Positions 1-58,895 of a stretch of 64,000 bases of DNA are shown here, piece after piece. The stretch is from Macrostomum lignano (taxonomy: Eukaryota), in NCBI GenBank assembly GCA_002269645.1, contig NIVC01000521.1:399876-463875 (forward strand), in the 5' to 3' direction. The notes below the pieces were generated by a model. It had not been told where the DNA came from. It was given only the letters and a program-made list of their open reading frames with translations, and ran no database searches. The translations under genes were made by a program, and so were the position numbers. How positions within the stretch are numbered: position 1 is the stretch's first letter; every line of letters begins with the position of its first letter.

Positions 1-402
1 CCTACTCAAGGCTTGCACCATCTCTGGTGAGCCTTTCACGTAGGCAGTAAAATGATCGGCGCCAAGTCGTCTGGCCACTACAGACATTCGCTGCAGGCTG
101 GAGCTAAACGGAAACTGACGGATGATGCCCAGCTGGTAGGGCAGCCGGTCAGGATCGATGCTGTCAATGTTGTCCACCGGTTCGGAGCCGGGCGGCCGGA
201 CAACTGTGGACACCAGCTGGTCGAATTTGCGATAGTCATCCTGCTCGGGCTCCTCCAGTACCCAACGGGTGCCTTGAAACATTTTCAAGTCCAGAGGATC
301 GCCGGATAGTTCGCCGCGTATTCTGGTGAGGGTGTGGCACACGGCCATGGCCTCCAGCAGAGGGGATGGAGACGGCAGACTGTGCGGCTCCGGGTTGGGG
401 CT
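1..402 (-). CDS. ATP13A3: ATP13A exon 10 (N domain), continues beyond window start
   Basis: Acceptor ccgccgcag at 403-404; [42 protein letters not shown]...[38 protein letters not shown]. Confidence 0.93.
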
Positions 403-3400
403 CTGCGGCGGCCAAGGGGTGAGGGAGATACGACAGATGTGATTGAGATCGTGGAGATGAAGGATAAGGGAGGTAGAGAAGTGAGAGGAGTGAGAGGAAA
501 AGTAAGAGGACATAAAATGGGGAGAGAGAGAAGAGACAGAACACACACTAGAGGCAGACACTGATAGAGAGAACAGACTGAAGGGATAGACCCTAATAGA
601 GAGGATAAACACTGAATGGAGAGACAGACAGGCAGACAGACAGACGGACAAGACAGACAAATAGACAGATACTAAGACAGACAAAAATGTATACAGACAG
701 ACAGACAGACAGGCGGGCAGACACTAAGACAGACAGACAGACAGATACAGACACACGCAGACAGACAGACAGACAGACAGACAGACACAGACACTAAGGC
801 AGACAGACAGACAATAGAGGACAAAACAAGCAGTCCTCACCTGGAATCTCCGCTCCTCAACGGGGACAACACCCCACAAGTCCAAGCCGTCCTCAGTCAG
901 GGTGCCAGTCTTGTCGAAGCACACGGCATTGAGGCCGCCAGAGATATTAATAGTATTCGGAGCGATGCAGAATATGTTAGCCTTGCGCAGTCGAGTCTGG
1001 GCAAACACAATGCCTACTGTCATAGCGGCTGGCAGAGCTGGCGGTACTATAATAGTGATCAGATCCAGCGCCCTGAGCATGATCTTTCCCACGGGATAAT
1101 CCCTGTGCAGCATGAGCACTATAGTATAGATGAACCCGGCCAAAGCGAACAGGCTGAGCACAATCAGATAATGCACAATGTCCTTATTGAATTTGAACTC
1201 AATCGGCTTAGGGAACAGAATCGATCTGACCATTTCGCCTTTGGCTGTGGCAAATCCTGTCCGAAGAACCACAGCGCGAACTCGGCCACTTTCTACGAAA
1301 CGCGTCTGAATGACGTGAGTGCCGCAGAACAGCACGTTCTTGTTGTGATCGCGGGTGCTGATGGGCCCGGACTCGGCCGCGCTCAGCGGAGTCTTCAGCA
1401 CCGGGACACTCTCGCCAGTGAGCATGCTCTCGTTCACGATGCAGTTGCCGGAGACCAGCACAGCGTCGCACTGCATCACGCAGCCGCCTTTGGGAATCTC
1501 GATTACATCTCCGGGTACGAGCAGGTCCGAGTTGATGGATACGTAGTCTGCGGGGATAGGGCTTGCGTTGCTATAATCTGCTACTGAATCTGCCTCTCCG
1601 CCTACAATCTGCTACTGAATCTGCCTCCCCGCCTACAATCTGCTACTGAATCTGCCTCCCCGCCTACAATCTGCTACTGAATCTGCCTCTCCGCTTGCAA
1701 TCTGCTACTGAATCTGCCTCCCCGCCTACAATCTGCTACTGAATCTGCCATTCCGCCTACAATCTGCTACTGAATCAGTGAATCTGCCTCTCCGCCTACA
1801 ATCTGCTACTGAATCTGCCTCTTCCGCCTACAATCTGCTACTGAATCTGCCTCTCCACTCACAATCTGCTACTGAATCTGCCTCTCCGCTCACAATCTGC
1901 TACTGAATCTGCCTCTCCGCTTGCAATCTGCTACTGAATCTGCCTCTCCGCTTGCAATCTGCTACTGAATCTGCCTCTCCGCTCCCCTACTTATTACAAT
2001 GAATCCTTCTTTCCGTCACACACAAGCCTAACTGCCTGAAAATGTTTTAAAAAGCATCTGGATCTGGGTCTTTCATTATTAAACATCCAATGAACTAGAC
2101 AAAGTGCAAGCCGCAGACTCTTTAATAAAAAATTGAACAGACAGTCCACTGCTTACTGTCTAAACCGCGGGCAACGCAGATCTCATTAGATGATACCAAC
2201 GTTTTGCGAAGATTGCGCTCGTTCTGCAAAATAAAGAGCCGAAAGGGTAAAAGACTGTATTGAGACACTGTAATACATTTGAGCCTTGGAAAGATTGCTA
2301 AAGCTTTGCTGATAACAGCTTTATCAGATAGTCACTTCTGATCAGCTGGCGAGTGGCTGCCTGAGGCTCGCTAATAACTTAAAACTTATATAACTAAGCA
2401 AATGTTTAACTTGCGCCAATAGCCTATATGACAGCAATGTATCGTTCTCTTGCGTCAGCAGGGCTTCCATTTAACTAATATTATACACTTGCGTTTGCAA
2501 TAACATACATTGTGCTCCGCTACGAGTATTCACTCTTCACTCTCCCAGTGAATAAGACACTCTCAGCCCCGTCTCATTCACTCTCAGCCCTGTCTCATTC
2601 ACTCTCAGCCCTGTCTCATTCACTCTCAGCCCTGTCTCATTTACTCTCACCTCCGTCTCATTCACTCTCACCTCCGTCTCATTCACTCTCAGCCCTGTCT
2701 CATTCACTCTCACCTCCGTCTCATTCACTCTCATCCCCGTCTCATTCACTCTCATCCCCGTCTCCTACACTCTCAGCCCCGTCTCATTCACTCTCAGCCG
2801 TCTCATTCACTCTCAGCCGTCTCATTCACTCTCAGCCATGTCTCATTCACTCTCAGCCCCGTCTCATTCACTCTCAGCCGTCTCATTCACTCTCACCTTC
2901 GTCTCATTAAGTCTCAGCCCCGCCTCATTCACTCTCACCTCCGTCTCATTAAGTCTCAGCCCTGTCTCATGCACTCTCAGCCCTGTCTCATTCACTCTCA
3001 CACCCGTCTCATTAATTTTCAGCCGTCTTATTCACTCTCACCTCCGTCTTATTCACTCTCACCTCCGTCTTATTCACTCTCAGCCGTCTCATTCACTCTC
3101 ACCTCCGTCTCATTAAGTCTCAGCCCCGTCTCATTCACTCTCACCTCCGTCTCATTAAGTCTCAGCCCTGTCTCATGCACTCTCAGCCCTGTCTCATTCA
3201 CTCTCACACCCGTCTCATTAATTTTCAGCCGTCTTATTCACTTTCACCTCCGTCTTATTCACTCTCAGCCCATCTCATTCACTCACCGCCCTGTCTATTA
3301 AAAGTACAAACCTAAAAGTACACAAACTAAAGAAGACGCGGTAACCTAATCCTGCTCAATAGAATTCATTAAATTCGATACCATGATAGACAACAGCCCC

Positions 3401-6400
3401 AGCCAGATCAATGCCTAATTAGCAAGCATTATATGAATGCAAATAAAGATTTCCTCACCCTAGCGGTCTCAAACACGGACAGAGACAGGGACAGCAGAGA
3501 GATGACCACAATGCAAGACGCGTACATCTCGTATTCATCGTTAAACCATAGGATAACGCTGAACAATTGAAACAGATAAAACGGATGCAAGGCCTGCAAT
3601 TTGTTTAAGGATGATTATCGCTTAAAAATCGCTTATATCCCCGAAAAGTTGGCAAAAACCAAGCAACTGGTGCTAACCTTGACGGCGAACAGTTTAGGTA
3701 TGGGGGTGAGCGGGATATTGACTCGATTCTCGCCGAATCTGACCCGGTGCCTGGCCGCGTCCGACTCCGTGAGGCCGGCCGTGTGGTGGAAGAACGAGCA
3801 GGGCGTGTCCACGAATACTCTGCGGGAGGGGGGTCAAGGGGTCATGCAATGTGAGGAGTGGACCTGAGCTGCTAGGTAGGCGTCCGAGGCGTCTGTAGGT
3901 TAGGCGGTGCAGCAACTGAGGATCTGGGAGGCTGGATCAGCAACTGGGGATCTGGGAGGCTGGCTTAGCAACTGAGGATCTGGGAGGCTGGATCAGCAAC
4001 TGAGGATCTGGAAGGCTGGTCCAGCAACTGAGGATCTGGGAGGCTGGCTTAGCAACTGAGGATCTGGGAGGCTGGCCCAGCAACTGAGGATCTGGGAGGC
4101 TGGATCAGCAACTGGGGATCTGGGAGGCTGGCTTAGCAACTGAGGATCTGGGATCTGGGAGGCTGGCCAGCAACTGAGGATCTGGGAGGCTGGCTTAGCA
4201 ACTGAGGATCTGGGAGGCTGGCCCAGCAACTGAGGATCTGGGAAGCTGGCCCAGCAACTGAGGATCTGGAAGAGAGGCTGGCCCAGCAACTGGGATCCCC
4301 AGCAACTGAGGATCTGAAAGAGTGGCACAGCAACTGAGGATCTGAAAGAGTGGCACAGCAACTGAGGATCTGAAAGAGTGGCACAGCAACTGAGGATCTG
4401 GAACGCTGGCCTAGCAACTGAGGATCTGGGAGGCTGGCCTAGCAACTGAGGATCTGGAACGCTGGCCCAGCAACTAAGGATCTGGGAGGCTACCAGTAAC
4501 CCAGAAACTGAGGATCTGGAGGGCGCCAATAGAAAGTACAACTCACTCAATCTTAACGAACAGCTGCTGGTCAGAGTTCCACACGTATTTGAGCTTCTTA
4601 TGAAAGAAGTAACGCGTCAGCGAGTCCTCCTGAGTAGGCAAATTCATCAGATCATCAGAGTTACTAGATGTAGACAGATAAGAATTAATTTTGTTTATCA
4701 TTGCTAATTTTGTTATGACATTGTAAGAGCTACAAAGTCTGGGATATGTACGGCTAGCTGCATCGATGAATTCTATAAAGCAAGAAACTCAGAAGACGCC
4801 AGACATCTTACACTGAACGGGTCCAGCAGGGGGGTGGCACTGCCGGTAGTTTCGTCGGTGGCGTGCTCATCGGGCAGGCACTGGTTGAGGCCGGCCCGAC
4901 TGCGCCTCAAAAGGCGGACCCTGCAGTGAGGCCGATTTTTAATTGGTGTTCAGCTTCACTAATTTACTGAGATTATAAGAGGAAGAGGAGAGGAGAGAGA
5001 AGAGGAGAGAGGAAGGAGAAGAGTAGAGAAGGAGAGGAAGAGGAGAGGAGAGGAGGAGAGGAGAGGAGAGGAGAGGAGAGAGGAGAGGAGAGAGAGGAGA
5101 GGAGAGGAGAAGGAGAGGAGAGGAGAGGAGAGGAGAGGAGAGGAGAGGAGAGGAGAGGAGAGGAGAGGAGAGGAGAGGAGAGGAGAGGAGAGGAGAGGAG
5201 AGAGAGGAGAGGAGAGAGGAGAGGAGAGGAGAGAGGAGAGGAGAGGAGAGGAGAGGAGAGGAGAGGAGAGGAGAGGAGAGAGAAGAGAGGAGAGAGGAGA
5301 GGGGGAGAGGAGAGGGGAGGAGAGGAGAGGAGAGGAGAGAGAAGAAAGAAGAGGAGAGAGGAGAGGGGAAGGAGAAGGGAGAGGAGAGAAGGGGGCTTTT
5401 TTGGCTATTTTGGTTATAGTGGAATTGAATCTATATTTTTGATACTAATTTACTACGCAATCATAACTATATTTATTACTAAAAAAACAAAATGCATTTG
5501 ATAACAAATAGTAGCACCGGTACTTGGTGCTTTCTCCAGCTGTGATTAAACACATACACAATCTATTCAGTACAAGCTTACACACATAGGGGCGCAAGCC
5601 TTCACTAAGCGTGAGAATTGAACAGCTAGAAAAAATTGAGTCAGTCAGCTCCTGAGTTTTTATGGATACAATAATGGGAATTGAGCCAGATTTTAAACTG
5701 CCCGAGAATAGCCTAAATCTATTTTGCATGCATACAATCAAGGAGAATTTAAAAAAGACTCGTGCTGAAGCGGTGGCAATGTGTACTTGATTGCAGGGTG
5801 ACAGAAGCCAGTTATAACTGGTATGAATTGTCACAGTAATGCTAGGATCTAGTATGATCCTTTGTAGAAAATTTAAATCAGATTAATCGTACACTAAATT
5901 AATTAAAGGCCTTACCTTGCTCCGCTCTTTGTCATCATTTGAACATCGTGAACAAAGAGCTGGCCATACTGGTCCTAAAATGTTGGGGAAAAAGTTAAAT
6001 AATTCGTCAGAGGAATCCCAGTCAGTGAAATCCCATCCAGAGGAATCCCAATCAGGGAAATCCGACCCAGAGGAATCCCAATCAGGGAAATCCCACCCAG
6101 AGGAATCCCAATCAGGGAAATCCGACCCAGAGGAATCCCAATCAGGGAAATCCCACCCAGAGGAATCCCAATCAGGGAAATCCCACCCAGAGGAATCCCA
6201 ATCAGGGAAATCCCACCCAGAGGAATCCCAGTCAGGGAAATCCCACCCAGAGGAATCCCAGTCAGTGAAATCCCACCCAGAGGAATCCCAATCAGGGAAA
6301 TCCCATCCAGAGGAATCCCAATCAGGGAAATCCCACCCAGAGGAATCCCAATCAGGGAAATCCCACCCAGAGGAATCCTAATCAGTGAAATCCCACCCAG

Positions 6401-7832
6401 AGGAATCCCAATCAGGGAAATCCCATCCAGAGGAATCCCAATCAGGGAAATCCCACCCAGAGGAATCCCAATCAGGGAAATCCCATCCAGAGGAATCCCA
6501 ATCAGGGAAATCCCACCCAGAGGAATCCCAATCAGGGAAATCCCATCCAGAGGAATCCCAATCAGGGAAATCCCACCCAGAGGAATCCCAATCAGGGAAA
6601 TCCCACCCAGAGGAATCCCAATCAGTGAAATCCCATCCAGAGGAATCCCAATCAGTGAAATCCCAACCAGAGGAATCCCAATCAGTGAAATCCCACCCAG
6701 AGGAATCCCAATCAGTGAAATCCCAACCAGAGGAATCCCAGTCAGTCAAAAAGGAACCAATATTAAGCTAAATGAACAGAAGATTAAGATTTGATATACC
6801 AAAGACAAGGTTTATTTAGATTTTCATTATTATATTATTATTAAGATCAATACCGGTTAGAAAACAAAAAATAAATACTCGCCTTGACAACAACTTTATC
6901 GGCCAGATCAAGGCTGCACCTGTCGTGAGTGCATCGTACGTGCAGCTCGGGCAGCCAGTGGAACAACAAGCGCAGCAGGAACGCACTAGTAACATAGCCA
7001 ATATAGACCAAAACAATTTTTGCTGGGTTTCGACGGTAGCCCAAAATTCTCTGCATTATAAAGCGGTTATTAGAAAACAGTTAATAACCAAAAAAGAGAA
7101 AAACTGTTTCTGCTACATTAGTAAATATTAAGAAATGATGTTTAATAAATAGGCAAAGAAATTCTTGGCATTGGTAACTGTACAGAGAATTTGTGCAGTC
7201 ACTTGTGTAATGATGGATCTAGATTGGAGGTCAATTGACCCCGCTTCAGCCAGTCACTACTGACATGATCTAGATTGGAGGTCAATTGACCCCACTTCAG
7301 CCAGTCACTACTGACATGATCTAGATTGGAGGTCAACTGACCCCCCTTGAGCCAGTCACTACTGACATGATCTAGATTGGAAGTCAACTGACCCCCCTTG
7401 AGCCAGTCACTAATGACGGATCTAGATTGGAGGTCAACAGACCCCCCTTGAGCCAGTCACTAATGACGGATCTAGATTGGAGGTCAACAGACCCCCCTTG
7501 AGCCGGTCACTAGTGACCAGAGCTAGATCCAAAGGAAGTTTCAAAAGGGTCAAGGGGTCAGCTATCCCCCCTCATAACCAAGGAAAAATTCCGGATTTGC
7601 AACTCCACCTGGCACATTGTGATAGGGTTTACAAGTCAATAATTCACTAGAGAGCTTGACACCAACTCTTGGCTTATTTTGTATCTATGAATCTAGCTAT
7701 AAAAAACTTAAATACTTATGCCACACTTACAGATTCATCGTCCTGGCCCTGGTTGAGTATCTCGGCCAGTTCAATGTCCTCCGCGTCATGGCGGATGCTG
7801 CCTACGCCATTCTCCACTTTTTTTAGTGTCAT
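1..7832 (-). CDS. ATP13A3: P5B-type ATPase (ATP13A2-5 family, polyamine/cation transporter), 3' partial; join(complement 7731..7832, 6883..7050, 5916..5974, 4812..4920, 4547..4629, 3678..3819, 3459..3593, 2157..2223, 841..1547, 1..402)
   Basis: Ten exons join in frame (1974 nt, 658 codons) with matching phases. Motifs: TGES (A domain), PPALP (P5B TM4), DKTGTLT (phospho-Asp), [21 protein letters not shown] and KGSPE. The symbol marks the family; the specific paralog cannot be assigned from sequence alone. Confidence 0.95.
622..812 (+). repeat. (AGAC)n microsatellite in ATP13A intron 9
   Basis: Direct reading of cagacagacagac runs with gacacta interruptions. Confidence 0.95.
841..1547 (-). CDS. 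ATP13A3: ATP13A exon 9 (A domain, TM3-4, phosphorylation site)
   Basis: Acceptor ccccgcag, donor GTGAGG; [40 protein letters not shown]. Confidence 0.97.
1575..1983 (+). repeat. 31-bp minisatellite AATCTGCTACTGAATCTGCCTCTCCGCCTAC, about 13 copies
   Basis: Direct reading; in ATP13A intron 8. Confidence 0.95.
2157..2223 (-). CDS. ATP13A3: ATP13A exon 8
   Basis: tttgcag|[22 protein letters not shown]|GTAAGC; phase 0 to 1 bridges exons 7 and 9. Confidence 0.88.
2560..3290 (+). repeat. about 21-bp minisatellite TCAGCCCCGTCTCATTCACTC
   Basis: Direct reading; 7-aa periodicity (SAPSHSL) in the spurious ORF; ATP13A intron 7. Confidence 0.95.
3459..3593 (-). CDS. ATP13A3: ATP13A exon 7 (TM1-TM2)
   Basis: [45 protein letters not shown]; attgcag acceptor, GTGAGG donor. 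Confidence 0.95.
3678..3819 (-). CDS. ATP13A3: ATP13A exon 6
   Basis: [47 protein letters not shown] (GL..R...FG.N motif of P-type ATPases); cccgcag / GTTAGC. Confidence 0.92.
3910..4519 (+). repeat. 28-bp minisatellite CAGCAACTGAGGATCTGGGAGGCTGGCC
   Basis: Direct reading; ATP13A intron 5; same unit recurs at 56640-57872. Confidence 0.96.
4547..4629 (-). CDS. ATP13A3: ATP13A exon 5
   Basis: [27 protein letters not shown] (P5 N-terminal RYF..KK.KY.W motif); actcag / GTGAGT. Confidence 0.92.
4812..4920 (-). CDS. ATP13A3: ATP13A exon 4
   Basis: [36 protein letters not shown]; ctgcag / GTAAGA; phases 2 to 0 fit neighbours. Confidence 0.82.
4979..5394 (+). repeat. (GGAGA)n polypurine microsatellite
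   Basis: Direct reading; ATP13A intron 3. Confidence 0.96.
5916..5974 (-). CDS. ATP13A3: ATP13A exon 3
   Basis: [19 protein letters not shown]; attttag / GTAAGG; phase 0 to 2. Confidence 0.85.
6008..6747 (+). repeat. 30-bp minisatellite CAGAGGAATCCCAATCAGGGAAATCCCACC, about 24 copies
   Basis: Direct reading; ATP13A intron 2. Confidence 0.97.
6883..7050 (-). CDS. ATP13A3: ATP13A exon 2 (membrane-associated N-terminal hairpin), GC donor
   Basis: [56 protein letters not shown]; acceptor atgcag, donor AAG|GCGAGT. Confidence 0.9.
7212..7520 (+). repeat. 50-51-bp tandem repeat, about 6 copies, abutting a MITE remnant at 7530-7610
   Basis: GATCTAGATTGG starts at 7216, 7267, 7318, 7369, 7419 and 7469. 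Confidence 0.92.
7731..7832 (-). CDS. ATP13A3: ATP13A first coding exon
   Basis: [34 protein letters not shown]|GTAAGT; LNQGQDDE resembles the N.G.EDE motif before the GY exon; in-frame TAA 8 codons upstream of the ATG. Confidence 0.85.
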
Positions 7833-16496: not shown

Positions 16497-16926
<430 letters not shown>

Positions 16927-19424: not shown

Positions 19425-19512
19425 ATGAACAGCCCAAGCAATCGGCAGAATCTGCAACAGCAGCAGCAACAGCAGCCCCTCCAGCTGACAGTCAACGATA
19501 AGAGGATCAAAG
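19425..19512 (+). CDS. GFI1: Gfi exon 1 (predicted)
   Basis: [29 protein letters not shown] + G; donor AAG|GTGAGT, phase 1 matches exon 2; in-frame TGA at 19419. Confidence 0.7.
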
Positions 19513-22500
19513 GTGAGTATCTAGCCCCATATAACTTTCGATGTCTTCGATATATAGAAGCTCAGTAGTTGCCGAATCAGGGAGAGGGGGGACTTAAGAT
19601 TCCGCAAGTGTGTGCAGATTTTTTTTACGTTGCCAGGCAGTCAGACAGGCGAATATTAGACTTGACTGTAGGATTTGAGAAGAATCTCCATTGAACAGCT
19701 GCTAAAGCCGACTCAATACTCGTTAAAGGAGTGCCTCTCCTAGGAATCGTTTGCTTCTTTTTTGAAACGTCGGAAAAATTGCAGGGGGAAGTTATTGATA
19801 GGCGGAAGAGCTATGGAGGCCATGAGCATTTTTAGAGTCTATGTGTAGTTAATCTAGTTAATTTACAAGTTTCAACTGATGAAGTTGCTCAGCAGCACGC
19901 ATGGCAGTTTCTCAAAAGCCATCGTGCCCGTCCCCCGTGCCAACTTATAAAATGTTCAACTCATTAATGTTTTGTATAAAAACTTCGATGCCATAAATAT
20001 ATGGAAGGCTCCAGGTGGTCATAAAAATGCAGTTCCCCGTGCCTGTATAGAAACAAGATATACAAGAAAACTTTTGTCTCTTTAAAAACATTCGACAGGC
20101 GAGCCACCGACAGCGACTCCAGGGCAGGAGTCTTCGGCCGCCTCAGGGCACCAGCCGATGTCGATGTCGCTACCGCCGATGCCGTTCCCGGCTGCCGCAG
20201 CTGCCGCAGCCGCCGCCGCAGCAGCCGCCGCGGCCGCCGCAGTGACCACAAACACTTCTCAGTCTCAGCAGCAGCAGCAGCAGACGACTCCGCCGCACTG
20301 CAAGCCGGTGTCCAGCGGCAACTCCTCCGCTGCCTCGCTGCCGACACTGCCGGGCCTGCCGGCTCCCTGGTTCTGCTGGCCGAACTATGCCGCCGCAGCT
20401 GCCGCCGCCGCCGCCCTGTTCGGCGGCACTGCAGCTGCAGGTCACGGCAAGCCCAATGGAATCGGTGAGCATTTCTACGAATTTCATATAGAAGACATGA
20501 AAACATGAAACAAACATACGGGGACATGAAACGTGAAAGACAGGGCGTCAGTATTCTCTTTAATATACTGCAGTTTTGTTTCAAAGTAAATCGTTTTACC
20601 AAATTGAAGCAAAAGATGCGCAATTGCAAAAAAGCTTCTATATCTTAGAAATTGTTTATGTATACACACACCCCGAATGAAGGCTGGCGCTCTGTGTAGG
20701 AATCGTATATACACAAAACTTTGTCCTGAAATGCACCCTATAATATGGGATCCTTTTCTCTGCAGCATGGTTGGACGGGGGGCGGAGACCGATTAGGATT
20801 GTTTTCGGCGTAATCAAATTTATTATCCCTTCAATAATGTGCGCAAATTTCTTGATTGTTTTGCCCGTCCAGCCCCCGAGGTCCTGAAGTCCTGAACAAA
20901 AAAGTGGCCCACCAAGAATATATAGCCAAGGTTAACAAGAACCTGGGGATCGCACAGGCCCAACATACAGACACACTTGACTTCCCAGCCGATCCCAACC
21001 ATGATGCCATTTCAATTTTCCCCGCATGGTTTTAAACAGCATTTACAACAATTTCTGTGCTGTGTAGAGAAAGCTTTCTTAGATTGAGTTTTCCGCAGCA
21101 ATATGCAGCTGGTTGTATCGTCACTCAACAGCGAAATTGAAGGAGTTGAAGATTCGATTGTAGCGAGCGGGGGAGGTGTTGCCATAGCCAACCAACCGAA
21201 CTGCAGGTTCAAAATTTCGAAAAAAGCAGCAATCGATGCAGCCAGCTTGGGATTTTTCGAGGTTGCGAGCTTTGATAGGGAATGAAATGAAATGACGCAA
21301 ATCTCCCCCCCCCCAAGCCCTAGCTGCTGTTGCTGGGCAAAATTCGCCACTTCAAGAACTGCGTGTGCGCCCTGTGTGTTAAGTTAGTTTTTGCTTTGCA
21401 AACAATTTTTCTACCGCAATTCATAGTTTTGTAATAATTCTCCCCTCATGCCTGCTCCCAGTTGGAAATATAGATGGAAGTACCGTTGGCATAGCAACCG
21501 TAACTATACAATAATAACAAAAAGAGATGCACGTCCGCCCAATTCGCTAAATCTCCACGCTTTGGTTCTTAAAAAAATTCGCTAAAATAAAGCTTCTTCA
21601 GTCTTCCAATGATAAATTTGTTAAACTGTCAGTGCACCGGCTCGGGTTTAATGAGCTTAAGACTAAGATCCCCGATTAAAATCTGGGAAGAAACGAAATT
21701 GGGGAAGGCCGACAGCGGGTGGCGCGAACGAAGAAGCAACTCAAACGAGGCGGCATTGCGGCACCGCGGGGGGTGGGTTGCTTGCGGCACATTATAGCGG
21801 CTATTTCATCAAGGCAACAGTTTGTGTTTTTCGATGCATGCCAGCTTAATACCCCATGATGCTGTTCACCGATTTTTTCCATCGAATCCTGTCCACCCCC
21901 ACCTCCCACATGCGGGCTCCCCTCCGAGAGGTCTTTAAGTCGGCGATCTTTCGATCTGCCAAAGAGCAACCCGACCGTGGCGCAGCATGCAGGTTCAATT
22001 GGGAATCTCCGATTTCAAAGACTGGGAGCATGCAGCTATATTTATATCTATATATATATGGAATATGCGGGCCCCTCGCCTTAGAGATTGAGGACACACA
22101 GAGATCGGCGGCGCCTGAGCACCGCTGCTGGGTGCCGCGCCCGCCTAATTGAAGAAACTCAGATACTCAGAAACTCAGATCACTCAGAAAGTCTTTAGCC
22201 TGAGTAGGATCCACGAGACGTAGAAGCATGAAATTTGTCTATGGTAAAGACCAACTTTTAAAAGTATCGCAGCAAAAATTTTAAACAGAAGCAGCCACTT
22301 TTGAGTCCACTGCAGCGAGTTAAAGTCAGTTCACCCCCTGAGTTCTTCAATTCAACAATGAAGCTGGAAAATCGCGACTTCAGAGCAATGATGTACCTGC
22401 ACTTCAAGCAAGGCAAGTCGCCGGCCGAATCGTATCAAACTTTACAGAACGTTTTCACCCATGTATGTCCTTCATACGCAACCGTCAAAAACTGGTTCGC

Positions 22501-25500
22501 TGAGTTTCGCCGAGGTCGAGAAAGCCTCGAAGATGAACATCGATCCGGGAGACCCTGTGACGCAGTGACTCCAGAAAATATCTGCGCTGTGTCCAGCATG
22601 ATTGCCGCTGACCGGCGAGTGACCTACCAGCAGATCCAGCAGGAGATCGGTATTGGATCGGGGAGTGTGCACGCCATTATGCACGAACACCTTGGAGTGC
22701 GGAAGCTGGCTTCCCGGTGGATCCCCCATCAGCTGTCGGACGTGCAGAAGGACACCAGGGTGGCTTGGTGCCGATTCATGCTGCAGAAATTCGAATCCGG
22801 GACCAGCCGGCGTATCTGGGACATCCTCACGGGCGATGAGACCTGGATTTATCAATACGACCCCGAAAGCAAGCGCCAGTCAGCCATGTGGACCTTTGGA
22901 GACGAGGACAGCCCCACAAAGTTTCGACGCAGCCGGAGTGTCGGCAAGCAGATGGTGGCCTGTTTCTTCATGCGCACTGGGCATGTGGCTTCCGTTTCAC
23001 TTGAAGATCGCCAGACAGTCACCGCTGACTGGTACACAACGGTTTGCCTGCCCAAGGTCTTTTCTGCTGTGAGCCAGAGGCGCCCAAGGTGCGGAATGCG
23101 TGGGGTGCTTCTGCACCACGACAACGCCAGCGCGCACACGGCGGCTCAAACTCTGGAGTTTCTGGCTGACTGTGGGGTCCAGCTGATGACTCACCCTGCT
23201 TACAGTCCAGACCTGGCACCGTGCGACTTTTTTCTGTTTCCGAAGTGCAAGGAGATTCTGAAGGGCCAGGTTTTTTCTTCACCGGAAGAAGCTGTAAATG
23301 AGTTCAAAAACATCATCGAGGAGCTCCGGGATGAGGATTGGCGGCATTGCTTCGACAGCTGGTTTCACAGGATGCAAGCCTGTATCAATGCCGGTGGAGA
23401 GTATTTTGAGCACTTGTAGTCGTTTTTTAGTTCATTTGTTGCTGTTTTCTTGTTCAGGCTAAGAACTTTCTGAGTGACCCTCGTACATGGAGATGTCTCC
23501 GAATGATTTCTAAACCGATTTTTTTGTGTGTGTGTCGCCAAACACTGCGCTGCCTACCTAATTAACCGATTGCGACTTCTATACAGCATTCCTATAGTCA
23601 ACATTTAACCTCCCCCCCCCCCTAACCCGCAGCTCCGCCGCTACCTCCCGTGACGTCATCAGCTGCCGCCGAGCTGCACGACGCTGCGGCTCAGCAGATG
23701 CGCGGCCTGCTGGAGTACCAGGCAGCTCTGCGGCACATGCTCGGAGTCGCCAGCCTGGCTGCCGCTGGCGGCGCGCCGCCTCCGCCGCCTCCGCCGCCCG
23801 CGCCACCAGCTCTGCCGACGCACCTGTCGATGCTGCAGCACAGCGGCAACAATCATCATCATCAACACCATCAGCAGAGTCAGCAGCGGATGACTGCCGC
23901 CCAGCATCCCAGCTTCAGCTGGTTCCCGACTCCGGCTGGCTCAATGCCGTTGCCGTCGGCTGGGCCGCTGCCGCCGCCTCTTCCGCCGCCGCCCCATCGG
24001 CCATCGTCATCGTCAGCAGCAGCCGCCGCCTTCCCCAGGCATCAGCAGGCGGCTGGCATGGCCGCATTCTGCGATCATCACCCACATTCGCCCTCGATCC
24101 TGGCCTCCAGGGAGACGGACTCGCTCAGCCCGGCCGATCACAAGGACCATGAGAACAGCAACGAGGACAGTCTGAGCAGCTGCGCGTCAACCAACGGCGG
24201 CGGTGTCGGCAACTTCCAGTGCGTCAAGTGCAGCAAGCTGTTTTCAACGCCGCACGGACTGGAGGTTCACGTTAGACGGTCAGTGCTGAGAAGCCGAAAC
24301 TGGTTCTAAAGTTTCTGTCATTATTGAAGACAATTAAGGGCAAGATTTAAAAGTCCCCCATAAAATGGTTTTGTTTCACTCCAGGTCTCACTCCGGCAAG
24401 AGGCCCTACGAGTGCGAAGTCTGCCAGAAGACGTTCGGCCATTCGATCTCGCTGTCGCAGCATCGGGCCGTGCACTCGCAGGAGAAAGTGTTCGAGTGCA
24501 AAGAGTGCGGCAAGACGTTCAAGCGGTCCAGCACGCTGAGCACCCACCTGCTCATCCACAGCGACACCCGGCCCTACCCGTGCCAGTACTGCGGCAAGCG
24601 CTTCCACCAGAAGTCGGACATGAAGAAGCACACCTATATTCACACAGGTGAGAACAGTTCCCCATGAGCCGTCAATTGCGCTAAATACATGTATGCTGAG
24701 CTATAGGCCAGGTGCCCGCGGCCCAACACCTAAAACGATTTTTTTACACCGTCATCGTCTAAAAACCCTAAATTGCCCAGCATCAGCGATCAAAAACCAC
24801 GTGTCACCCCCGAGCACCGCGTGCAGGAGTCTGGAGGTCGCTATTTATAGCTCTGATAGGGGCAGGGGGCGACCGAAGAACCGATTCAGCTTCTCTGAAA
24901 ACCGTCTGATTTCCGCTACGCCTACCAGAGCGTAGACGTGCAATTAATTAGCTTTACGCCTCCAAATTCTCTCCGCGACCCGCATTGAAACTCGACCACG
25001 GTCCTCCGGGTCTCGCTGATTGCCTCCTTAACCTGTGACCGCCATGCGGTTTAGCTCCTCCTCAGCTTCCACGCCCACCGATTCTTCTCCATCTCTATCT
25101 CGCCTCTGTCTAAGCACAGCTGTCTAATGCTACGAGTTGCACACGACCACGGCGTGCGGACAAGCGCCAACACATCACACCTATAAATGCTTGGCCCCCA
25201 TTGTAACCCTATACGCATCTGTCTCTTACATACATGCATGCATTTAGTTGCATCGCTTAGCTAGATATTTCTATATATATCAAACATCACTATGCTTTAT
25301 GGGGCCCGCATACTCTGTGCACACACTTCATCTGACCTACCAGTCTCACCCTAGCCCCCCCCCCCAGCCTGACCAAGCAGAAGCACATGTGTGTCTCAGA
25401 ATTATAGTGAAAGGCACTTCCCATTTTTATAAATCCTGCACACAAATCCCGATTGATATAAATATATAGATGCATGAAAATCCAGCGGCGTGAAAGCACT

Positions 25501-26252
25501 CGAAAAATCCCCCCCTCCTCCCCGTCAATTAGGGAGACCGCGCGAGACCCGTCCGTCTCTTCCCTGATCCCCACCCGCTGCTGCTCCAGCGGCTCTGATT
25601 CCTCCCTCATTGAGGCATCATCACACCAGCAAACAAATGGAGAGTTGGGAGAATCAACAGGCTTTCCCCGGCTGCGTGATCCCAGATTTTTTTCACTGAA
25701 GAGTTTTTAGTCCGATTTCAGTATAAAAATTCAATCCCATGACATTAAAATCGCAGACAGGAAAATTTTGGGAAAGTACACCTTACCCGGTTCAAAATCT
25801 ATAAGATGATGCTCCGTCTCTTACTTTTCTCAGGTGAGAAGCCCTACAAATGCGTGCAGTGCGGCAAGGCCTTCAGCCAGTCGTCCAACCTGATCACGCA
25901 CAGCCGGAAGCACACCGGCTACAAGCCGTTCACCTGCAACCAGTGCGGTCGCAGCTTCCAGCGCAAGGTGGACCTGCGCAGGCACACGGAGACTCAGCAC
26001 GCCTGTCCCGCCGCAGCTGCCACCGCCGTGGCTGCCGCCGGCTCCCTTGACACTCGCAGCCCGTCGCCAATGCAACTGATCCCCACTGCCTCGACGGTCA
26101 GCAGGCAGCAGCAGCAGCAGCAGCAGCAGTTGTCATACTCCGTAGACAGCATTCTAAGCAGAAGTGACAGCTCAGGCGGTGCTCAATCCGCAGCAGCAGG
26201 CAGCATCGCCGAGACGATGGCCGGTTCAACAACAATGGAAGCCATGGCTTAG
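19425..26252 (+). CDS. GFI1: Gfi1/Senseless/PAG-3 family C2H2 zinc-finger transcription factor, 593 aa; join(19425..19512, 20099..20464, 23633..24278, 24385..24647, 25834..26252)
   Basis: Six fingers carry the Gfi-diagnostic sequences [66 protein letters not shown] and [14 protein letters not shown]. All junctions are GT-AG and in phase (1782 nt). Exons 1-2 are less certain than the finger exons. Confidence 0.93.
20099..20464 (+). CDS. GFI1: Gfi exon 2 (Ala/Gln-rich)
   Basis: cgacag acceptor, GTGAGC donor, phase 1 to 1; poly-Ala/poly-Gln typical of transcription factors. Confidence 0.8.
22180..23483 (+). mobile_element. Mariner (DD34D) DNA transposon in Gfi intron 2, left TIR truncated
   Basis: Right TIR (reverse complement TACGAGGGTCACTCAGAAAGTTCTTAGCCTGA) at 23454-23485 ends in TA; left copy 22180-22203 matches the inner 24 bp (2 mismatches) but lacks the outer 8 bp. 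Confidence 0.93.
22358..23419 (+). CDS. Mariner transposase, intact, 353 aa
   Basis: N-terminal HTH region, WIPHQL linker, [20 protein letters not shown]; 34 residues between the second and third catalytic Asp. Confidence 0.96.
   Translation: MKLENRDFRAMMYLHFKQGKSPAESYQTLQNVFTHVCPSYATVKNWFAEFRRGRESLEDEHRSGRPCDAVTPENICAVSSMIAADRRVTYQQIQQEIGIGSGSVHAIMHEHLGVRKLASRWIPHQLSDVQKDTRVAWCRFMLQKFESGTSRRIWDILTGDETWIYQYDPESKRQSAMWTFGDEDSPTKFRRSRSVGKQMVACFFMRTGHVASVSLEDRQTVTADWYTTVCLPKVFSAVSQRRPRCGMRGVLLHHDNASAHTAAQTLEFLADCGVQLMTHPAYSPDLAPCDFFLFPKCKEILKGQVFSSPEEAVNEFKNIIEELRDEDWRHCFDSWFHRMQACINAGGEYFEHL
23633..24278 (+). CDS. GFI1: Gfi exon 3 (Pro/His-rich region and ZF1)
   Basis: cctaacccgcag acceptor with CTAAC branch point; [21 protein letters not shown]; donor GTCAGT. 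Confidence 0.93.
24385..24647 (+). CDS. GFI1: Gfi exon 4 (ZF2-ZF4)
   Basis: ctccag / GTGAGA; [19 protein letters not shown]...HTYIHT. Confidence 0.97.
25834..26252 (+). CDS. GFI1: Gfi exon 5 (ZF5-ZF6 and C-terminal tail)
   Basis: ttttctcag acceptor; [55 protein letters not shown]; stop TAG. Confidence 0.96.
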
Positions 26253-27409: not shown

Positions 27410-28113
27410 AGTACTGGCTAACTCATTAGCTCAGGTATTGGCTAACTCATTAGCTAAGGTCTTGGCTAACTCATTAGCTCAGGTATTGGCTAACTCATTA
27501 GCTCAGGTCTTGGCTAACTTATTAGCTCAGGTCTTGGCTAACTCATTAGCTCAGGTCCTGGCTAACTCATTAGCTCAGGTCTTGGCTAACTCATTAGCTC
27601 AGGTCTTGGCTAACTCATTAGCTCAGGTCTTGGCTAACTCATTAGCTCAGGTCTTGGCTAACTCATTAGCTCAGGTCTTGGCTAACTCATTAGCTCAGGT
27701 CTTGGCTAACTCATTAGCTCAGGTCTTGGCTAACTCATTAGCTCAGGTCTTGGCTAACTCATTAGCTCAGGTCTTGGCTAACTCATTAGCTCAGGTCTTG
27801 GCTAACTCATTAGCTCAGGTCTTGGCTAACTCATTAGCTCAGGTCTTGGCTAACTCATTAGCTCAAAATCTTGGCTAACTCATTAGCTCAGGTCTTGGCT
27901 AACTCATTAGCTCAAAATCTTGGCTAACTCATTAGCTCAGGTCTTGGCTAACTCATTAGCTCAGGTCTTGGCTAACTCATTAGCTCAGGTCTTGGCTAAC
28001 TCATTAGCTCAGGTCTTGGCTAACTCATTAGCTCAGGTCTTGGCTAACTCATTAGCTCAGGTCTTGGCTAACTCATTAGCTCAGGTATTGGCTAACTCAT
28101 TAACTCAAGTCTT
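27410..28113 (+). repeat. 24-bp minisatellite TTGGCTAACTCATTAGCTCAGGTC, about 29 copies
   Basis: Direct reading; highly homogeneous. Confidence 0.97.
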
Positions 28114-29694
28114 GGATAGACATTAGCATAAGTTTTACAACGTCTGCAACTTAACTACTTAAATTTGCTTCGAACTCAGCCAACCCCTTCGAATGGATCA
28201 ATTTAAATCCTACCAAATCCCGAAAGTCATTCGCGGCGAGGAACATAAAAAATTGAAGTCAAAATCGAAGGCAGCGCATCTGGGCCACAAAAGCACAAAC
28301 TCACTCTGCCAGTTTGGGAGATTCCCCAGTTTCAATAACTCGATAAAAAGCTCGGAAAACTTCGAGTCCCCAGATTCGGCAGAACGGTACACCCGAAGCT
28401 CATTGCTGCTGGCCCGGTTAAATTCCCTGAATTATGCATGCGGCCTTGTAATCCGAGCAGATTAGCGGCCACTTATCCGGGTGCAGGCTAATGGCCTCAT
28501 CCGCAACCCCACGGGATCGCCTCATACCACTCGCGGCTTGGACACCAACCGCTGAGAAGTCGATTTGGGGGATCTGGGAGGTGATGCGGCAGAGAGGAGA
28601 GAGAGAGAGGCTGGAAACCAGTGAACTGCGCGCCGCGGATTAAACAGGATGAAGCAAAACTCTTTCCAGACTCGCTATGCCTGTGCCAGCCTGACCGGGA
28701 GTGCAGAGAAAAGTTGCCAGACTTGATGAAGCTCCCCCCCCCGGATCCAGCTTAAAAACAACGGTAGATTATACTGTCCGAAAGTGAGGCTCCTGAGGTC
28801 TTATAGCTCGTAATAACCATATCGAAAATTCAATTCGACCGCTCCGCCCCCAAGTCTTGAAAAGTTTCCAGTGAATTTCTAGTAATAATCAGATTGGTGA
28901 AAACTGTGGGATCATGAGCGAGTGAATGACAAGAAGAGAGTATAGTTGGGGACGTTTAGCACCTGGGGAAGTCTCACGCGGAGTCCTTGTCAAGGTTTTC
29001 CCATTAATAAAGTTGAAGAGAGGGACGGAGCGAGAGTGAAGTTATACATATACACACGCATGAAAGAGGAAAATTTACAATTTTGATGAAATTTGATGAA
29101 ATAAGCTCAGCGAATGAACCAAATGGAAAAGTGGAGCGATCCGGGATGGAGAGTCTGCATCAGTTTTTTAGTAGACTTGCTCACAGTCTCAGCTCAGGGA
29201 ATCTGTTTAAGCATTACCCATGGGCAGTTATTTCACTCCTCTAATGGCACTTCGCTTCCTGCAATGCTCAGAGGTAGATAAGGGGAATATAGCTTAGGCC
29301 ATTCCAACAGGTGTTGTCGGGCAGGATGCAGCAGTGACGGCTGGGAGTTCAAACTTGCTAACCACTATCTGATGCAAGGATTATAAAGTATCCCGTTGAT
29401 AGCTTTAGGCTATAGTGTTTGTGCAGACTCCCGGACACTGAGTGGTGATGGGGCTTTAGGATTGTTAAACTTGCTGTTAACTCCCGGCTTTGGACTCGTG
29501 AAGTCTCACTACAATATGTATGAGTTTGTTTGTCTCTGAAATGCTGGGATAATTACAATATTTGCCGATCCCATCAGCTGCCTGCTGAGATAATCTATTA
29601 TAATCTATTAATCAGGCTACATCACACTGCTTCTCAGTTCGTGTCCTCTCATTATGAAACCAAGACTTAGTCTCCATCTCCATCTCCCTCTGAT

Positions 29695-33197: not shown

Positions 33198-33983
33198 GGA
33201 ATTCTATTCCTTCCATATTGGCTAGATTAGCAATCAATTCTATTCCTTCCATATTGGCTAGATTAGCAATCCATTCTATTCCTTCCATATTGGCTAGATT
33301 AGCAATCCATTCTATTCCTTCCATATTGGCTAGATTAGCAATCCATTCTATTCCTTCCATATTGGCTAGATTAGCAATCAATTCTATTCCTTCCATATTG
33401 GCTAGATTAGCAATCCATTCTATTCCTTCCATATTGGCTAGACTAGCAATCCATTGTATCCCTTCCATATTGGATAGACTAGCAATCCATTATATCCATT
33501 CCATATTGGATAGACTAGCAATCCATTGTATCCCTTCCATATTGGATAGACTAGCAATCCATTATATCCATTCCATATTGGATAGACTAGCAATCCATTA
33601 GATTCATTCCATATTGGATGGACTAGCAATCCATTATATTCATTCCATATTGGATAGACTAGCAATCCATTCTATTCCTACCATATTGGCTAGATTAGCA
33701 ATCCATTCTATTCCTACCATATTGGCTAGATTAGCAATCCATTCTATTCCTTCCATATTGGCTAGATTAGCAATCCATTCTATTCCTACCATATTGGCTA
33801 GATTAGCAATCCATTCTATTCCTTCCATATTGGCTAGATTAGCAATCCATTCTATTCCTTCCATATTGGCTAGATTAGCAATCCATTCTATTCCTTCCAT
33901 ATTGGCTAGATTAGCAATCCATTATATCCCTTCCATATTGGATAGACTAGCAATCCATTATATCCCTTCCATATTGGCTAGAT
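33198..33983 (+). repeat. 36-bp minisatellite TTCCATATTGGCTAGATTAGCAATCCATTCTATTCC, about 22 copies
   Basis: CCATATTGG at 33213, 33249 and onward. Confidence 0.97.
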
Positions 33984-34696
33984 TAGCAATCCAGTTTTTA
34001 GCGCTCAGCATTAGCCAAGAACCAGCATCTCAGCTGTTGTTAGCTACCATTTATTCAAAAAAGACAATTTAAACACAACCGAGTCGAAAAAAGAGCCACA
34101 GAAACACTCGAGTTGTGTCCATCGCAACACAGTCAGCTTCTGCATGGCTGTCAGTCAGAATCCACTTGTTAAGCAATAGAAAAACTTGTCAGCAAGTCCT
34201 GTTGTGTCAGTTCCACTGGGTAGAATTAGAAAAAACGAACAACAACAGGGATATTGCGGACTGGACAGAGATTGGCGTGACACCTTTGACAGTACACAGG
34301 TGAAACACCCAGCGAAACGCCTGTAAAGTTGATATAACGTTTGCTTGCTTCAAGCAAGTGGATTGATTGCCTTCAATTTGTTTGTTAAGAGCAAACGTCT
34401 GTCAAGTAATGCTAACTTCACGCCCGGCTCCTTGTGTTAACCAGGGCTTTTTCTATTGCACAAACACAATTCACTTAATAGGCAAAGGTGAGAGTGAGAG
34501 TGGAAAGAAGCGCACAGGAGGCTGGTTTAAGAAGCTACATCAGCCAAACGCTGAAGCCATGGATACCAAGCTGAGCTGAAGTTCGATATTAATTTTAGGA
34601 TACGGCCAATAGGCAGTGCAGGTGTAATTGCGGCCGGAATTTATTTAGTGTGACGCTTCACCCCGTTAAAAAAAGTTTCCTATTTTAATAACTATT

Positions 34697-41933: not shown

Positions 41934-42330
41934 CATCTGGGAGGGTGGCCGAGGCCCCGCCTGGAGATCTGGGAGGGTGACGGTAGAGCTTGGGGATCTG
42001 GGAGGGTGACGGTAGAGCTTGGGGATCTGGGAGGGTGACGGTAGAGCTTGGGGATCTGGGAGGGTGACGGTAGAGCTTGGGGATCTGGGAGGGTGACGGT
42101 AGAGCTTGGGGATCTGGGAGGGTGACGGTAGAGCTTGGGGATCTGGGAGGGTGACGGTAGAGCTTGGGGATCTGGGAGGGTGCCGGTAGAGCTTGGGGAT
42201 CTGGGAGGGTGCCGGTAGAGCTTGGGGATCTGGGAGGGTGACGGTAGAGCTTGGGGATCTGGGAGGGTGACGGTAGAGCTTGGGGATCTGGGAGGGTGAC
42301 GGTAGAGCCTGGGGATCTGGGAGGGTGGTG
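41934..42330 (+). repeat. 29-bp minisatellite GGGGATCTGGGAGGGTGACGGTAGAGCTT
   Basis: Direct reading; shares GGATCTGGGAGG with the 28-bp family. Confidence 0.96.
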
Positions 42331-47272: not shown

Positions 47273-50200
47273 GGCAGACAAAAAAAACAGACAGACAGAC
47301 ACACAGACAGACGGACACTAACAGACAGGCAGACACTAACAGACAGGCAGACACTAACAGACAGGCAGACACTAACAGACAGGCAGACACTAACAGACAG
47401 GCAGACACTAACAGACAGACAGACAGACACTAACAGACAGGCAGACACTAACAGACAGACAGACAGACACTAACAGACAGACAGACAGACACTAACAGAC
47501 AGGCAGACACTAACAGACAGGCAGACACTAACAGACAGGCAGACACTAACAGACAGGCAGACACTAACAGACAGACAGACACTAAGACACAGGCAGACAC
47601 TAACAGACAGGCAGACACTAACAGACAGGCAGACACTAACAGACAGGCAGACACTAACAGACAGGCAGACACTAACAGACAGGCAGACACTAACAGACAG
47701 GCAGACACTAAGACACAGGCCAATAGAGACAGCTCAAAGCTTTGTTGTCAGCTGGCAATGAACAAGCGATTCCCCTCATTGAACGTTCAGCGCACAAAGA
47801 ATTGGGAACAATTTCCAAGCAGCAAGTTGACGTTATAAATCTATGGCTATAATCGTATACACAAGCAACCCCGAATTGATATATTAATGCGCCTTAATAA
47901 GACATAAAAACTCAGCACGGCCAGACAGAAGCGCTGGTGGCGGTGGTAGGCGGTGGTTGGGTCGGGTGATCAGCTTTAATTTAGCACCGGCGCCAACAAT
48001 CCACCCATGGGAGTTCGACAAGCTCCCAAGCAAAACCCGATGCCAATTATCAGATAAAGACTAAAGGGTTGGCGACCCCTTGCTTCCTTCTGTCAACTGG
48101 CCACCCCAACCCCTTGGCCAGTCCCCCCCGAAGGCTCGAATAGAAATCGACATTGGGGCGAGTCACCAAGGCCAGTGGACTTGAAGAGCTAGATCATGCA
48201 TAATATCATTATTGTATACGATTTAGATCTTGCTGTAAGATCACTTGTTGAGACTACTGCTATTTAGAGCTTGCCAATAATAATAAAAACCATATAGGGT
48301 TGCTCATAAATTTGGGGGGAAATTTTTTTAGAGAATTCCCTGGGGCTAATCGGAGCCGAAGAAATTCGATGGCCGATGGCCTAAATTGTTTTTATCTCGT
48401 AAATAGCCATTGAAACACTCGTTTCCAATCTTCTGCTTCTAGAAGGAGGACCCTCCAGGAGGCGCAAAATAGATCCGCGTCACGCAGGCCAACTACGCGG
48501 GCGCGGTTTGGGCCGTTTTATTCTTGTCACCGCAGCCATGCTTTTGTAGGCGATTTTGGGCTCTGTAGCTGACCGCCTGCCCGCGTCTCTTCCCTCTCCT
48601 TCCTCCCTGTCAGCCTCTCCCTCTTAGCCTCTCCCTTTCCCTCTCAGCCTCTCCCTTTCCCTCTCAGTCTCTCCCTTTCCCTCTCAGCCTCTCCCTCTCT
48701 CTCTCAGCCTCTCCCTTTCCCTTTCCCTCTCAGCCTCTCCCATTCCCTCTCTCTCTCAGCTTCTCCCTTTCCCTCAGCCTCTCCCTTTCCTTTTCCCTCT
48801 CGCCTCTCCCTTTCCCTCTCAGCCTCTCCCTCTCTCTCTCTCTCAGCTTCTCCCTTTCCCTCTCAGCCTCTCCCTTTCCCTCTCAGCCTCTCCCTCTTAA
48901 CCTCTCCATTTCCTTTTCCCTCTCGCCTCTCCCTTTCCCTCTTAGCCTCTCCATTTCCTTTTCCCTCTCGCCTCTCCCTTTCCCTCTTAGCCTCTCCCTT
49001 TCCTTTTCCATCTCGCCTCTCCCTTTCCCTCTCAGCCTCTCCCTCTCCCTCTTAACCTCTCCATTTCCTTTTCCCTCTCGCCTCTCCCTTTCCCTCTCAG
49101 CCTCTACCTCTCCCTCTTAACCTCTCCATTTCCCTTTCCCTCTCGCCTCTCCCTTTCCCTCTCAGCCTCTCCCTCTCCCTCTTAACCTCTCCATTTCCTT
49201 TTCCCTCTCAGCCTCTCCCTTTCCTTTTCCCTCTCGCCTCTCCCTTTCCATCTCAGCCTCTCCCTTTCCATCTCAGCCTCTCCCTTTCCATCTCAGCCTC
49301 TCCCTTTCCCTTTCCCTCTCAGCCTCTCCCTTTCCCTCTCAGCCTCTCCCTTTCCATCTCAGCCTCTCCCTTTCCATCTCAGCCTCTCTCTTTCCCTTTC
49401 CCTCTCAGCCTCTCCCTTTCCCTTTCCCTCTCCCTCTCAGCCTCTCCCTTTCCCTTTCCCTCTCAGCGTCTCCCTCTCAGAATCTCCCTTTCCCTCAGCG
49501 CCTCTCCCTCTCAGCCTCTCCCTTTCCCTTTCCCTCTCAGCGTCTCCCTCTCGGAATCTCCCTTTCCCTCAGCGCCTCTCCCTCTCCCTCTCAGCCTCTC
49601 CCTTTCCCTTTCCCTCTCAGCGTCTCCCTTTCCCTTTCCCTCTCAGCGTCTCCCTTTCCCTTTCCCTCTCAGCATCTCCCTCTCAGAATCTCCCTTTCCC
49701 TCAGCGCCTCTCCTTTTCCCTCTCAGCCTCTCCTTTACCCTCTCAGCCTCTCCTTTTCCCTCTCAGCCTCTCCTTTTCCCTCTCAGCCTCTCCTTTTCCC
49801 TCTCAGCCTCTCCTTTTCCCTCTCAGCCTCTCCTTTTCCCTCTCAGCCTCTCCTTTACCCTCTCAGCCTCTCCTTTACCCTCTCAGCCTCTCCTTTTCCC
49901 TCTCAGCCTCTCCTTTTCCCTCTCAGCCTCTCCTTTTCCCTCTCAGCCTCTCCTTTTCCCTCTCAGCCTCTCCTTTTCCCTCTCAGCCTCTCCCTTTTCA
50001 TCTCAGAATCTTTCTTTCCCTTAGCCTCTCCCTCTTAGCCTCTCCCTCTCAGCCTCTCCTTTCCATCTCAGAATCTTTTTTCCCTCTTAGTCTCTCCCTT
50101 TCCCTCAGCCTCTCCCTCTTAGCCTCTCCCTTTCCCTCAGCCTCTCCCTCTTAGTCTCTCCCTTTCCCTCTCAGAATCTCCCTTTCCCTCAGCGCCTCTC

Positions 50201-58687: not shown

Positions 58688-58724
<37 letters not shown>

Positions 58725-58725
58725 G

Positions 58726-58764
<39 letters not shown>

Positions 58765-58789
58765 GACTAACTAACTAACTAACTAACTG

Positions 58790-58856
<67 letters not shown>

Positions 58857-58895
58857 GACTAATTAACTAAATAACTAACTAACTGACTGACTAAT

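Follow-up and report, generated by a model that had tools for sequence, protein, structure and literature searches.

A candidate eh1-type Groucho-binding motif in the C-terminal tail of a SNAG-less Gfi-family protein

How does a transcription factor of the Gfi/PAG-3/Senseless (GPS) family repress its targets when it lacks the SNAG peptide? SNAG is the peptide by which Gfi1 and Gfi1b recruit LSD1/CoREST, and this SNAG-LSD1 route explains their repression; to our knowledge, no motif on record explains repression by the SNAG-less Senseless, Senseless-2, PAG-3 and their relatives. The question is posed by a 64-kb stretch of the Macrostomum lignano contig NIVC01000521.1 (64,000 nucleotides, forward-strand positions 399,876 to 463,875; hereafter the window, in whose own numbering coordinates are given unless another locus is named), which carries a Gfi-family gene. 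The initial annotation had singled out a heptapeptide in the C-terminal tail of the encoded protein, YSVDSIL, as a match to eh1, the class of motif that recruits Groucho/TLE, and had proposed that this SNAG-less Gfi may have swapped LSD1 recruitment for Groucho recruitment. By our sequence analysis, the peptide is a plausible and statistically solid candidate for eh1, and the Gfi gene that encodes it genuinely lacks SNAG. That it would also be a working Groucho-binding motif, supplying the repression role held elsewhere by SNAG, is a proposal that we regard as evenly balanced.

Scanning all six frames for C2H2 zinc fingers gave matches on the plus strand only, three at 24413-24643 and two at 25851-26000, with a further finger (finger 1) closing an upstream open frame; the open stretch of the last exon begins GEKPYKC... 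and holds two C2H2 fingers followed by the tail. Five exons can be joined in frame by canonical splice sites on the plus strand, giving a 593-residue product that begins MNSPSN.... Exons 3-5 of this model are secure, and the other two are tentative.

19425..19512, plus strand: exon 1, putative first coding exon, tentative; ATG with an in-frame TGA 6 nt upstream, GTGAGT donor, in-frame join to exon 2
20099..20464, plus strand: exon 2, putative, tentative, encoding an Ala/Gln/Pro-rich low-complexity N-terminal region; AG acceptor, GTGAGC donor, phase fitting exon 3
23633..24278, plus strand: exon 3, a Pro/Ala/His-rich disordered region and finger 1; Gfi-specific finger-1 signature, donor after HVRR, as in the Echinostoma caproni locus
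24385..24647, plus strand: exon 4, fingers 2-4; C2H2 scan, splice sites, Pfam zf-C2H2 and zf-H2C2_2
25834..26252, plus strand: exon 5 (last), fingers 5-6, the 83-residue C-terminal tail and a TAG stop at 26250-26252; pyrimidine tract and AG acceptor (25832-25833), single open frame to the stop
26001..26249, plus strand: tail C-terminal to finger 6 (residues 511-593), biased in composition and predicted to be disordered; composition, and pLDDT of a single-sequence AlphaFold2 model that is poor overall
26106..26129, plus strand: poly-Gln run (8 Q) directly N-terminal to the motif; translation
26127..26156, plus strand: eh1-like motif as an extended 10-mer (residues 553-562), with the core YSVDSIL at 26136-26156; EH1 matrix score, ELM LIG_EH1_1 match, shuffle controls

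By its finger sequences, the window gene is a GPS-family gene of an animal. Its six tandem C2H2 fingers carry the family signatures STPHGLEVH (finger 1), HQKSDMKKH and SQSSNLITH (within fingers 3-5) and QRKVDLRRH (finger 6), and across the finger region the identity to proteins annotated as Gfi-1, Gfi-1b or Senseless-2 is 80-87%, in keeping with the assignment made in the initial annotation. Matching proteins come from nemerteans, annelids, molluscs, priapulids, hemichordates, echinoderms, insects and fish. Introns follow finger 1 (HVRR/S) and finger 4 (HTG/EKP), leaving fingers 5-6 and the tail in the last exon, a layout identical to that of the one locus compared, in the trematode Echinostoma caproni. 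Since the six fingers are almost unchanged from those of other family members, we expect by analogy that the protein would bind the usual Gfi-type DNA site. Pfam recognised C2H2 fingers only (zf-C2H2 and zf-H2C2_2). A similarity search with the non-finger parts (low-complexity sequence masked) reached other Gfi proteins in finger 1 alone and returned no homologue covering exon 1 or exon 2; no similarity of the N-terminal half to a family member could be detected.

Translation of 26136-26156 on the plus strand yields YSVDSIL, and the minus strand reads *NAVYGV there, a stop-containing sequence. The heptapeptide lies 45 residues past the last His of finger 6, in a tail that runs from an Ala-rich part through eight Gln and the motif to a Ser/Gly/Ala-rich part, confirming the placement between poly-Gln and Ser/Ala-rich sequence that had been described. 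Because fingers 5-6 and the motif share one stop-free exon, the motif is translated whenever the last exon is used.

We scored the peptide with the EH1 MEME log-odds matrix and the ELM regular expression, both taken from Klaus et al. 2022 (PMC9890238, Datasets EV6 and EV7). The matrix derives from 38 sites within Drosophila domains that repress in experiments, and its consensus is KLSFSIESIL. The 10-mer reaches 17.41 bits, with six identities and four conservative changes relative to this consensus, and the runner-up 10-mer in the protein scores 0.33 bits. LIG_EH1_1, which allows Tyr at the Phe position ([FYH]), has a single match in the whole protein, SYSVDSILS (residues 555-563), and on both counts YSVDSIL is a strong, near-consensus eh1 match. 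All motif residues but Tyr are among those most used at their positions. The match is good rather than top-class, as this matrix gives 22-26 bits to the validated fly sites in inv, slou, erm and CG15269.

Such a peptide could be a chance match, that is, a non-functional by-product of a fast-evolving, biased tail in a protein that represses or activates otherwise, an explanation that we consider rather unlikely. The per-position probability of 17.41 bits is 5e-6 against a SwissProt background and 2e-7 against the protein's own non-finger composition, so that at most 0.002 matches of this quality are expected among its 423 non-finger residues; shuffling reached the score once in 20,000 trials with the non-finger residues and never in 20,000 with the tail. 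The same 5e-6 implies tens of such matches per proteome, however, several co-repressor motifs could have been noticed, and some ELM eh1 match arose in 384 of 20,000 shuffles (1.9%).

Alternatively, the peptide might be a functional short motif that does not involve Groucho, for example a hydrophobic patch regulated by Ser phosphorylation, a degron or an intramolecular contact. Its Ser-rich surroundings could be phosphorylated and short hydrophobic helices are promiscuous, but each of the ten positions agrees with EH1 preferences, the L-S upstream and the S/D/S spacer among them, and no other ELM co-repressor pattern fits at this site, which leaves this alternative improbable. Elsewhere in the protein, the one other co-repressor pattern is a weak CtBP-type PMSMS in the tentative exon 2 (20157-20171, plus strand, residues 49-53), which fits the loose ELM CtBP-binding expression (PxDLS class) and is probably due to chance; YKPF in a finger linker, picked up as WRPW, was discarded as a false match of the expression.

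If the peptide does bind Groucho, the tail motif would most likely fold into a short amphipathic helix, and Tyr556, Val558, Ile561 and Leu562 would insert in the central pore of the Groucho/TLE WD40 propeller, in the manner of the Engrailed and Goosecoid eh1 peptides. For TLE1, Jennings et al. (2006) reportedly described eh1 peptides that bind as a short helix within the central pore of the WD40 propeller. The Groucho/HDAC co-repressor would then be tethered to Gfi target genes, providing a repression module for a SNAG-less Gfi. That the protein is a nuclear DNA-binding factor, and that its biased tail is apparently disordered, fits this reading.

The eh1 motifs of Engrailed, Invected, Goosecoid, Slouch and Erm/Fez resemble the window motif in pattern and occupy a disordered site of a DNA-binding repressor, as the window motif is predicted to do. 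The window motif differs from these examples in having Tyr for the usual Phe and in sitting C-terminal to the DNA-binding domain, EH1 domains being biased to N-termini. A Tyr/His-type, Groucho-binding eh1 variant is known in the Pax octapeptide, (H/Y)S(I/V)xx(I/L)L, which shares with the window motif the initial Tyr/His followed by S-(I/V)-x-x-I-L but occurs in paired-domain hosts. EH1-containing domains of the fly depend specifically on Gro, and their repression is lost when the motif is mutated (PMC9890238). Among C2H2 proteins, Odd-skipped and Bowl have C-terminal eh1-like motifs and CES-1 an N-terminal eh1 (Copley 2005, PMC1310626); Odd and Bowl are like the window protein in being C2H2 regulators with the motif C-terminal, although they belong to other zinc-finger families.

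Copley's survey makes no mention of Gfi, Senseless or PAG-3, and the searchable literature contained nothing linking eh1 to any of the three, in agreement with the initial annotation, which knew of no described eh1 in Gfi proteins; an eh1 motif in this family appears to be new. A Gfi-Groucho link is not wholly new, because GFI1B already associates with TLE1/TLE3, doing so through a six-residue N-terminal 'WRD' motif likened to the Groucho-binding region of LEF-1 (Shooshtarizadeh et al. 2019, PMC6426870). GFI1B matches the role proposed for the window protein as a Gfi-family factor in physical association with Groucho/TLE, but it is a SNAG-bearing vertebrate protein and its motif is N-terminal and not of the eh1 type.

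The usual N-terminal repression module of the family is SNAG (MPRSFLVK/MPKSFLVK in Gfi1/Gfi1b), which is also present in Snail and Scratch and is absent from the window protein. Peptides of the type P(R/K)SF(L/M)(V/I)(K/R) were absent from all six frames of the 64-kb window with strict and loosened patterns alike, and the same six frames gave no match to the 'SAFxVVTPK' box, which most Gfi proteins have after SNAG and which occurs in SNAG-less arthropod members as well. One might still suppose that the gene model is at fault, with a missed SNAG-encoding exon or a spliced-out tail, in which case there would be no switch to explain. Exons 1 and 2 are placed by splice signals and open frames and are, like the 5' end, putative, and this tentative start counts as a point against the proposal of a SNAG-less repressor. 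Even so, a SNAG-like peptide is missing from every frame, loose patterns included, and the motif lies in a continuous exon with fingers 5-6. Moreover, the divergent gene next to it, for a P5-type ATPase whose N-terminus is encoded by the exon at 6868-7050, closes off the interval upstream and limits the room for a missed 5' exon. We consider a gene-model artefact very improbable, and the premise of a SNAG-less gene stands.

Most simply, the missing SNAG reflects a secondary loss or a paralogue-specific state. The SNAG start MP(R/K)SFLVK was found in 114 of the family members that we collected, among them nemertean, annelid, mollusc, priapulid, echinoderm, hemichordate, amphioxus and vertebrate proteins. 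A statement from 2010 that SNAG is vertebrate-only (PMC2889900) is contradicted by this wide invertebrate occurrence and is outdated. Two further N-termini, octopus MPCSLVIKK and MDKTAFFMKNLI of the bryozoan Watersipora, look like degenerate versions of SNAG.

Had SNAG been exchanged for eh1, the two should be anticorrelated across the family, as the initial annotation predicted. We collected 203 proteins with the Gfi finger-6 signature and scanned their non-finger regions, with expectations derived from composition and shuffles.

ELM regular expression match: SNAG-bearing 0/114 (3.0 expected), SNAG-less 35/89 (2.9 expected)
Matrix score of at least 12 bits: SNAG-bearing 1/114 (0.77 expected), SNAG-less 27/89 (0.69 expected)
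Matrix score of at least 14 bits: SNAG-bearing 0/114 (0.28 expected), SNAG-less 20/89 (0.26 expected)
Matrix score of at least 17 bits: SNAG-bearing 0/114 (0.06 expected), SNAG-less 7/89 (0.05 expected)

The anticorrelation was found as predicted, and it argues against a chance match in the window: SNAG-bearing counts are at chance level, while SNAG-less ones are more than tenfold above it. These results suggest, at the level of sequence, that eh1-type motifs in SNAG-less but not in SNAG-bearing Gfi proteins may mark repeated Groucho recruitment wherever SNAG is missing. The pattern also makes the idea testable in Drosophila or Tribolium sens-2, and in Artemia.

All the arthropod eh1-like motifs are N-terminal to the fingers. 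Insect proteins have two, KFGINRLV and AFSVSALLRPD, the latter recalling the ILRPD flank of vertebrate Engrailed; Tigriopus likewise has SFGIHRLM and LFSVSSLLG. Decapods carry SFTISSLVG, and mites and a chelicerate-like protein carry DYSIEQLLK, KYTIEELLK and DYSIEALLG. In Artemia franciscana, the N-terminal KSDFSVDSIL (overlapping with DFSVDSILK) scores 23.9 bits, and its core is identical to that of the window motif save for the exchange of F and Y. The insect and copepod pair, (K/S)FGI(N/H)RL(V/M) and (A/L)FSVS(A/S)LL, is conserved in Gfi/Senseless-2-type proteins (P0043, P0050, P0058, P0062, P0065, P0077, P0078, P0085, P0105, P0108 and P0413 of our collection), and we found no description of it in the searchable literature. 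Another collected protein, P0434, with 'DYSIEALLGPSK', was considered as a flatworm link to Echinostoma and rejected, its fingers being nearest to those of chelicerates.

The only parallel in position comes from Echinostoma caproni, whose Gfi tail carries PLPYSVELLLGPSK (PYSVELLLG region), a Tyr-type eh1 as in the window. Residues 122-289, comprising fingers 5-6, a 96-residue spacer and YSVELLL, are encoded by one uninterrupted exon (locus L001, 11004-11507), and the motif lies 12 residues from the stop. We had considered that this C-terminal motif might be a gene-fusion artefact, and rejected the idea since fingers 5-6, tail and motif form one exon. The finger-1 exon ends at HVRR here too, and the 7 kb of upstream sequence available at L001 do not encode a SNAG. 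A last exon made up of fingers 5-6 and a tail with a Tyr-type eh1 is thus seen twice, and this shared tail position speaks against chance in the window; beyond the motif, the two tails have nothing alike.

The public gene model of E. caproni (P0411; UZAN01044302.1, L001) itself seems incomplete, with a finger-1 exon lying upstream of the annotated start, and the stretch between fingers 4 and 5 in that model looks like intron read-through.

L001 7345-7395 and 9092-9532: discrepancies in the E. caproni gene model

Against a working Groucho-binding motif in the window protein, several observations have to be set beside its tentative 5' end. Tyr at the key Phe position is a minority state, present in 2 of the 38 matrix sites and giving just 0.74 of the 17.4 bits. 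The low-complexity tail is probably fast-evolving, a place where chance motifs arise and vanish. A relative sharing it was found neither in 5.8 billion clustered proteins nor in 1.84 billion representatives, where a search with finger 6 and the tail gave no alignment over the motif, nor by exact look-ups (gene model and open reading frames of the last exon, the mariner element and the ATPase) or in a metagenome scan, which returned generic multi-finger genes only. An AlphaFold2 single-sequence model of the last-exon peptide has no helix at the motif, but with a mean pLDDT of 57 and mis-folded fingers its quality is too low for it to be weighed for or against; its values below 50 nearly throughout the tail are, like the low-complexity flanks, consistent with disorder, within the limits of so unreliable a model. 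The scan counts are phylogenetically non-independent, representing about three lineages (arthropods, a trematode and the window organism). An eh1-like motif is lacking in many SNAG-less Gfi proteins, among them those of spiders, horseshoe crab, a bryozoan and Dimorphilus and the second paralogues of bivalves and gastropods. Finally, the repressive domain mapped in Drosophila Sens (residues 98-284) contains no stringent EH1 call. The absence of a relative sharing the tail and the SNAG-less proteins without a motif also favour a chance match. As for the tail SSYSSIIES of P0347, we rejected it as a degenerate homologue, its fingers being just 73% identical and the tails failing to align.

Because SNAG-less proteins without the motif exist, the rule is one-directional: eh1-like motifs occur only where SNAG is absent. 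Of the 'corepressor switch' put forward in the initial annotation, the absence of SNAG, the strong eh1 match and the anticorrelation across the family stand, while the many SNAG-less Gfi proteins without eh1 and the published GFI1B-TLE link tell against it. As a whole the proposal is partly supported; the word 'swapped' goes beyond the present data, as it implies a historical replacement and they give no order of events.

More broadly, Gfi factors may have repeatedly exchanged their repression handle in bilaterians, the ancestral SNAG/LSD1 being lost in several lineages and eh1/Groucho serving instead in at least three, with SNAG and eh1 mutually exclusive; this we put forward tentatively, as possible but somewhat doubtful. 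The three eh1-bearing lineages would be the arthropods, with N-terminal and often two motifs, a trematode and the window organism, the last two with C-terminal motifs that both begin with Tyr. If true, mutual exclusivity would explain how SNAG-less Senseless-2/Gfi-type proteins repress. A Groucho-recruiting eh1 in SNAG-less members would offer a concrete, testable repression mechanism and a case in which co-repressor modules were exchanged while the DNA-binding scaffold was conserved; if the match is due to chance, the finding is an ordinary low-complexity tail.

The window also holds a gene for a P5-type cation/polyamine ATPase (ATP13A-like). As the N-terminus of this minus-strand gene is in the 6868-7050 exon, it and the Gfi gene are arranged head to head. 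Its exons, within window positions 1-7050, have about the following coordinates.

about 280-360, minus strand: P5-type ATPase exon
727-1611 (also delimited as 817-1608), minus strand: P5-type ATPase exon
3426-3830, minus strand: P5-type ATPase exon
4546-4629, minus strand: P5-type ATPase exon
6868-7050, minus strand: P5-type ATPase exon

The best database matches to an exon of this gene, from bivalves, are just ~63% identical, which suggests that public protein sets cover the window organism poorly. Scanning the window with Rfam and for tRNA genes gave no matches. An open frame at 60477-61184 on the minus strand (236 codons, ordinary non-repetitive composition, no Pfam match) may be part of a gene so far unrecognised, as one of its exons.

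Intron 2 of the Gfi gene contains an apparently intact mariner-type DNA transposon of ~1.3 kb (22180-23477, plus strand). Its 24-nt terminal inverted repeats (22180-22203 and 23454-23477) are 92% complementary, and the transposase frame (22358-23419) runs uninterrupted for 353 codons; in Pfam, HTH_48 (Mos1 type) scores above its cut-off, and Transposase_1 and DDE_3 just below theirs.

About 27 high-scoring micro- and minisatellite arrays take up ~19 kb, or 29% of the window, of which the following are examples.

2558-3296: tandem array
6008-6745: tandem array
16497-16925: tandem array
27415-28115: tandem array
33201-33993: tandem array
48591-51032: tandem array
56629-57872: tandem array
58688-60444: tandem array

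A 28-bp minisatellite unit (CAGCAACTGAGGATCTGGGAGGCTGGC) is found both at 3910-4491 and at 56629-57872, and a related 29-bp unit at 41962-42327; this recurrence suggests a dispersed minisatellite family.

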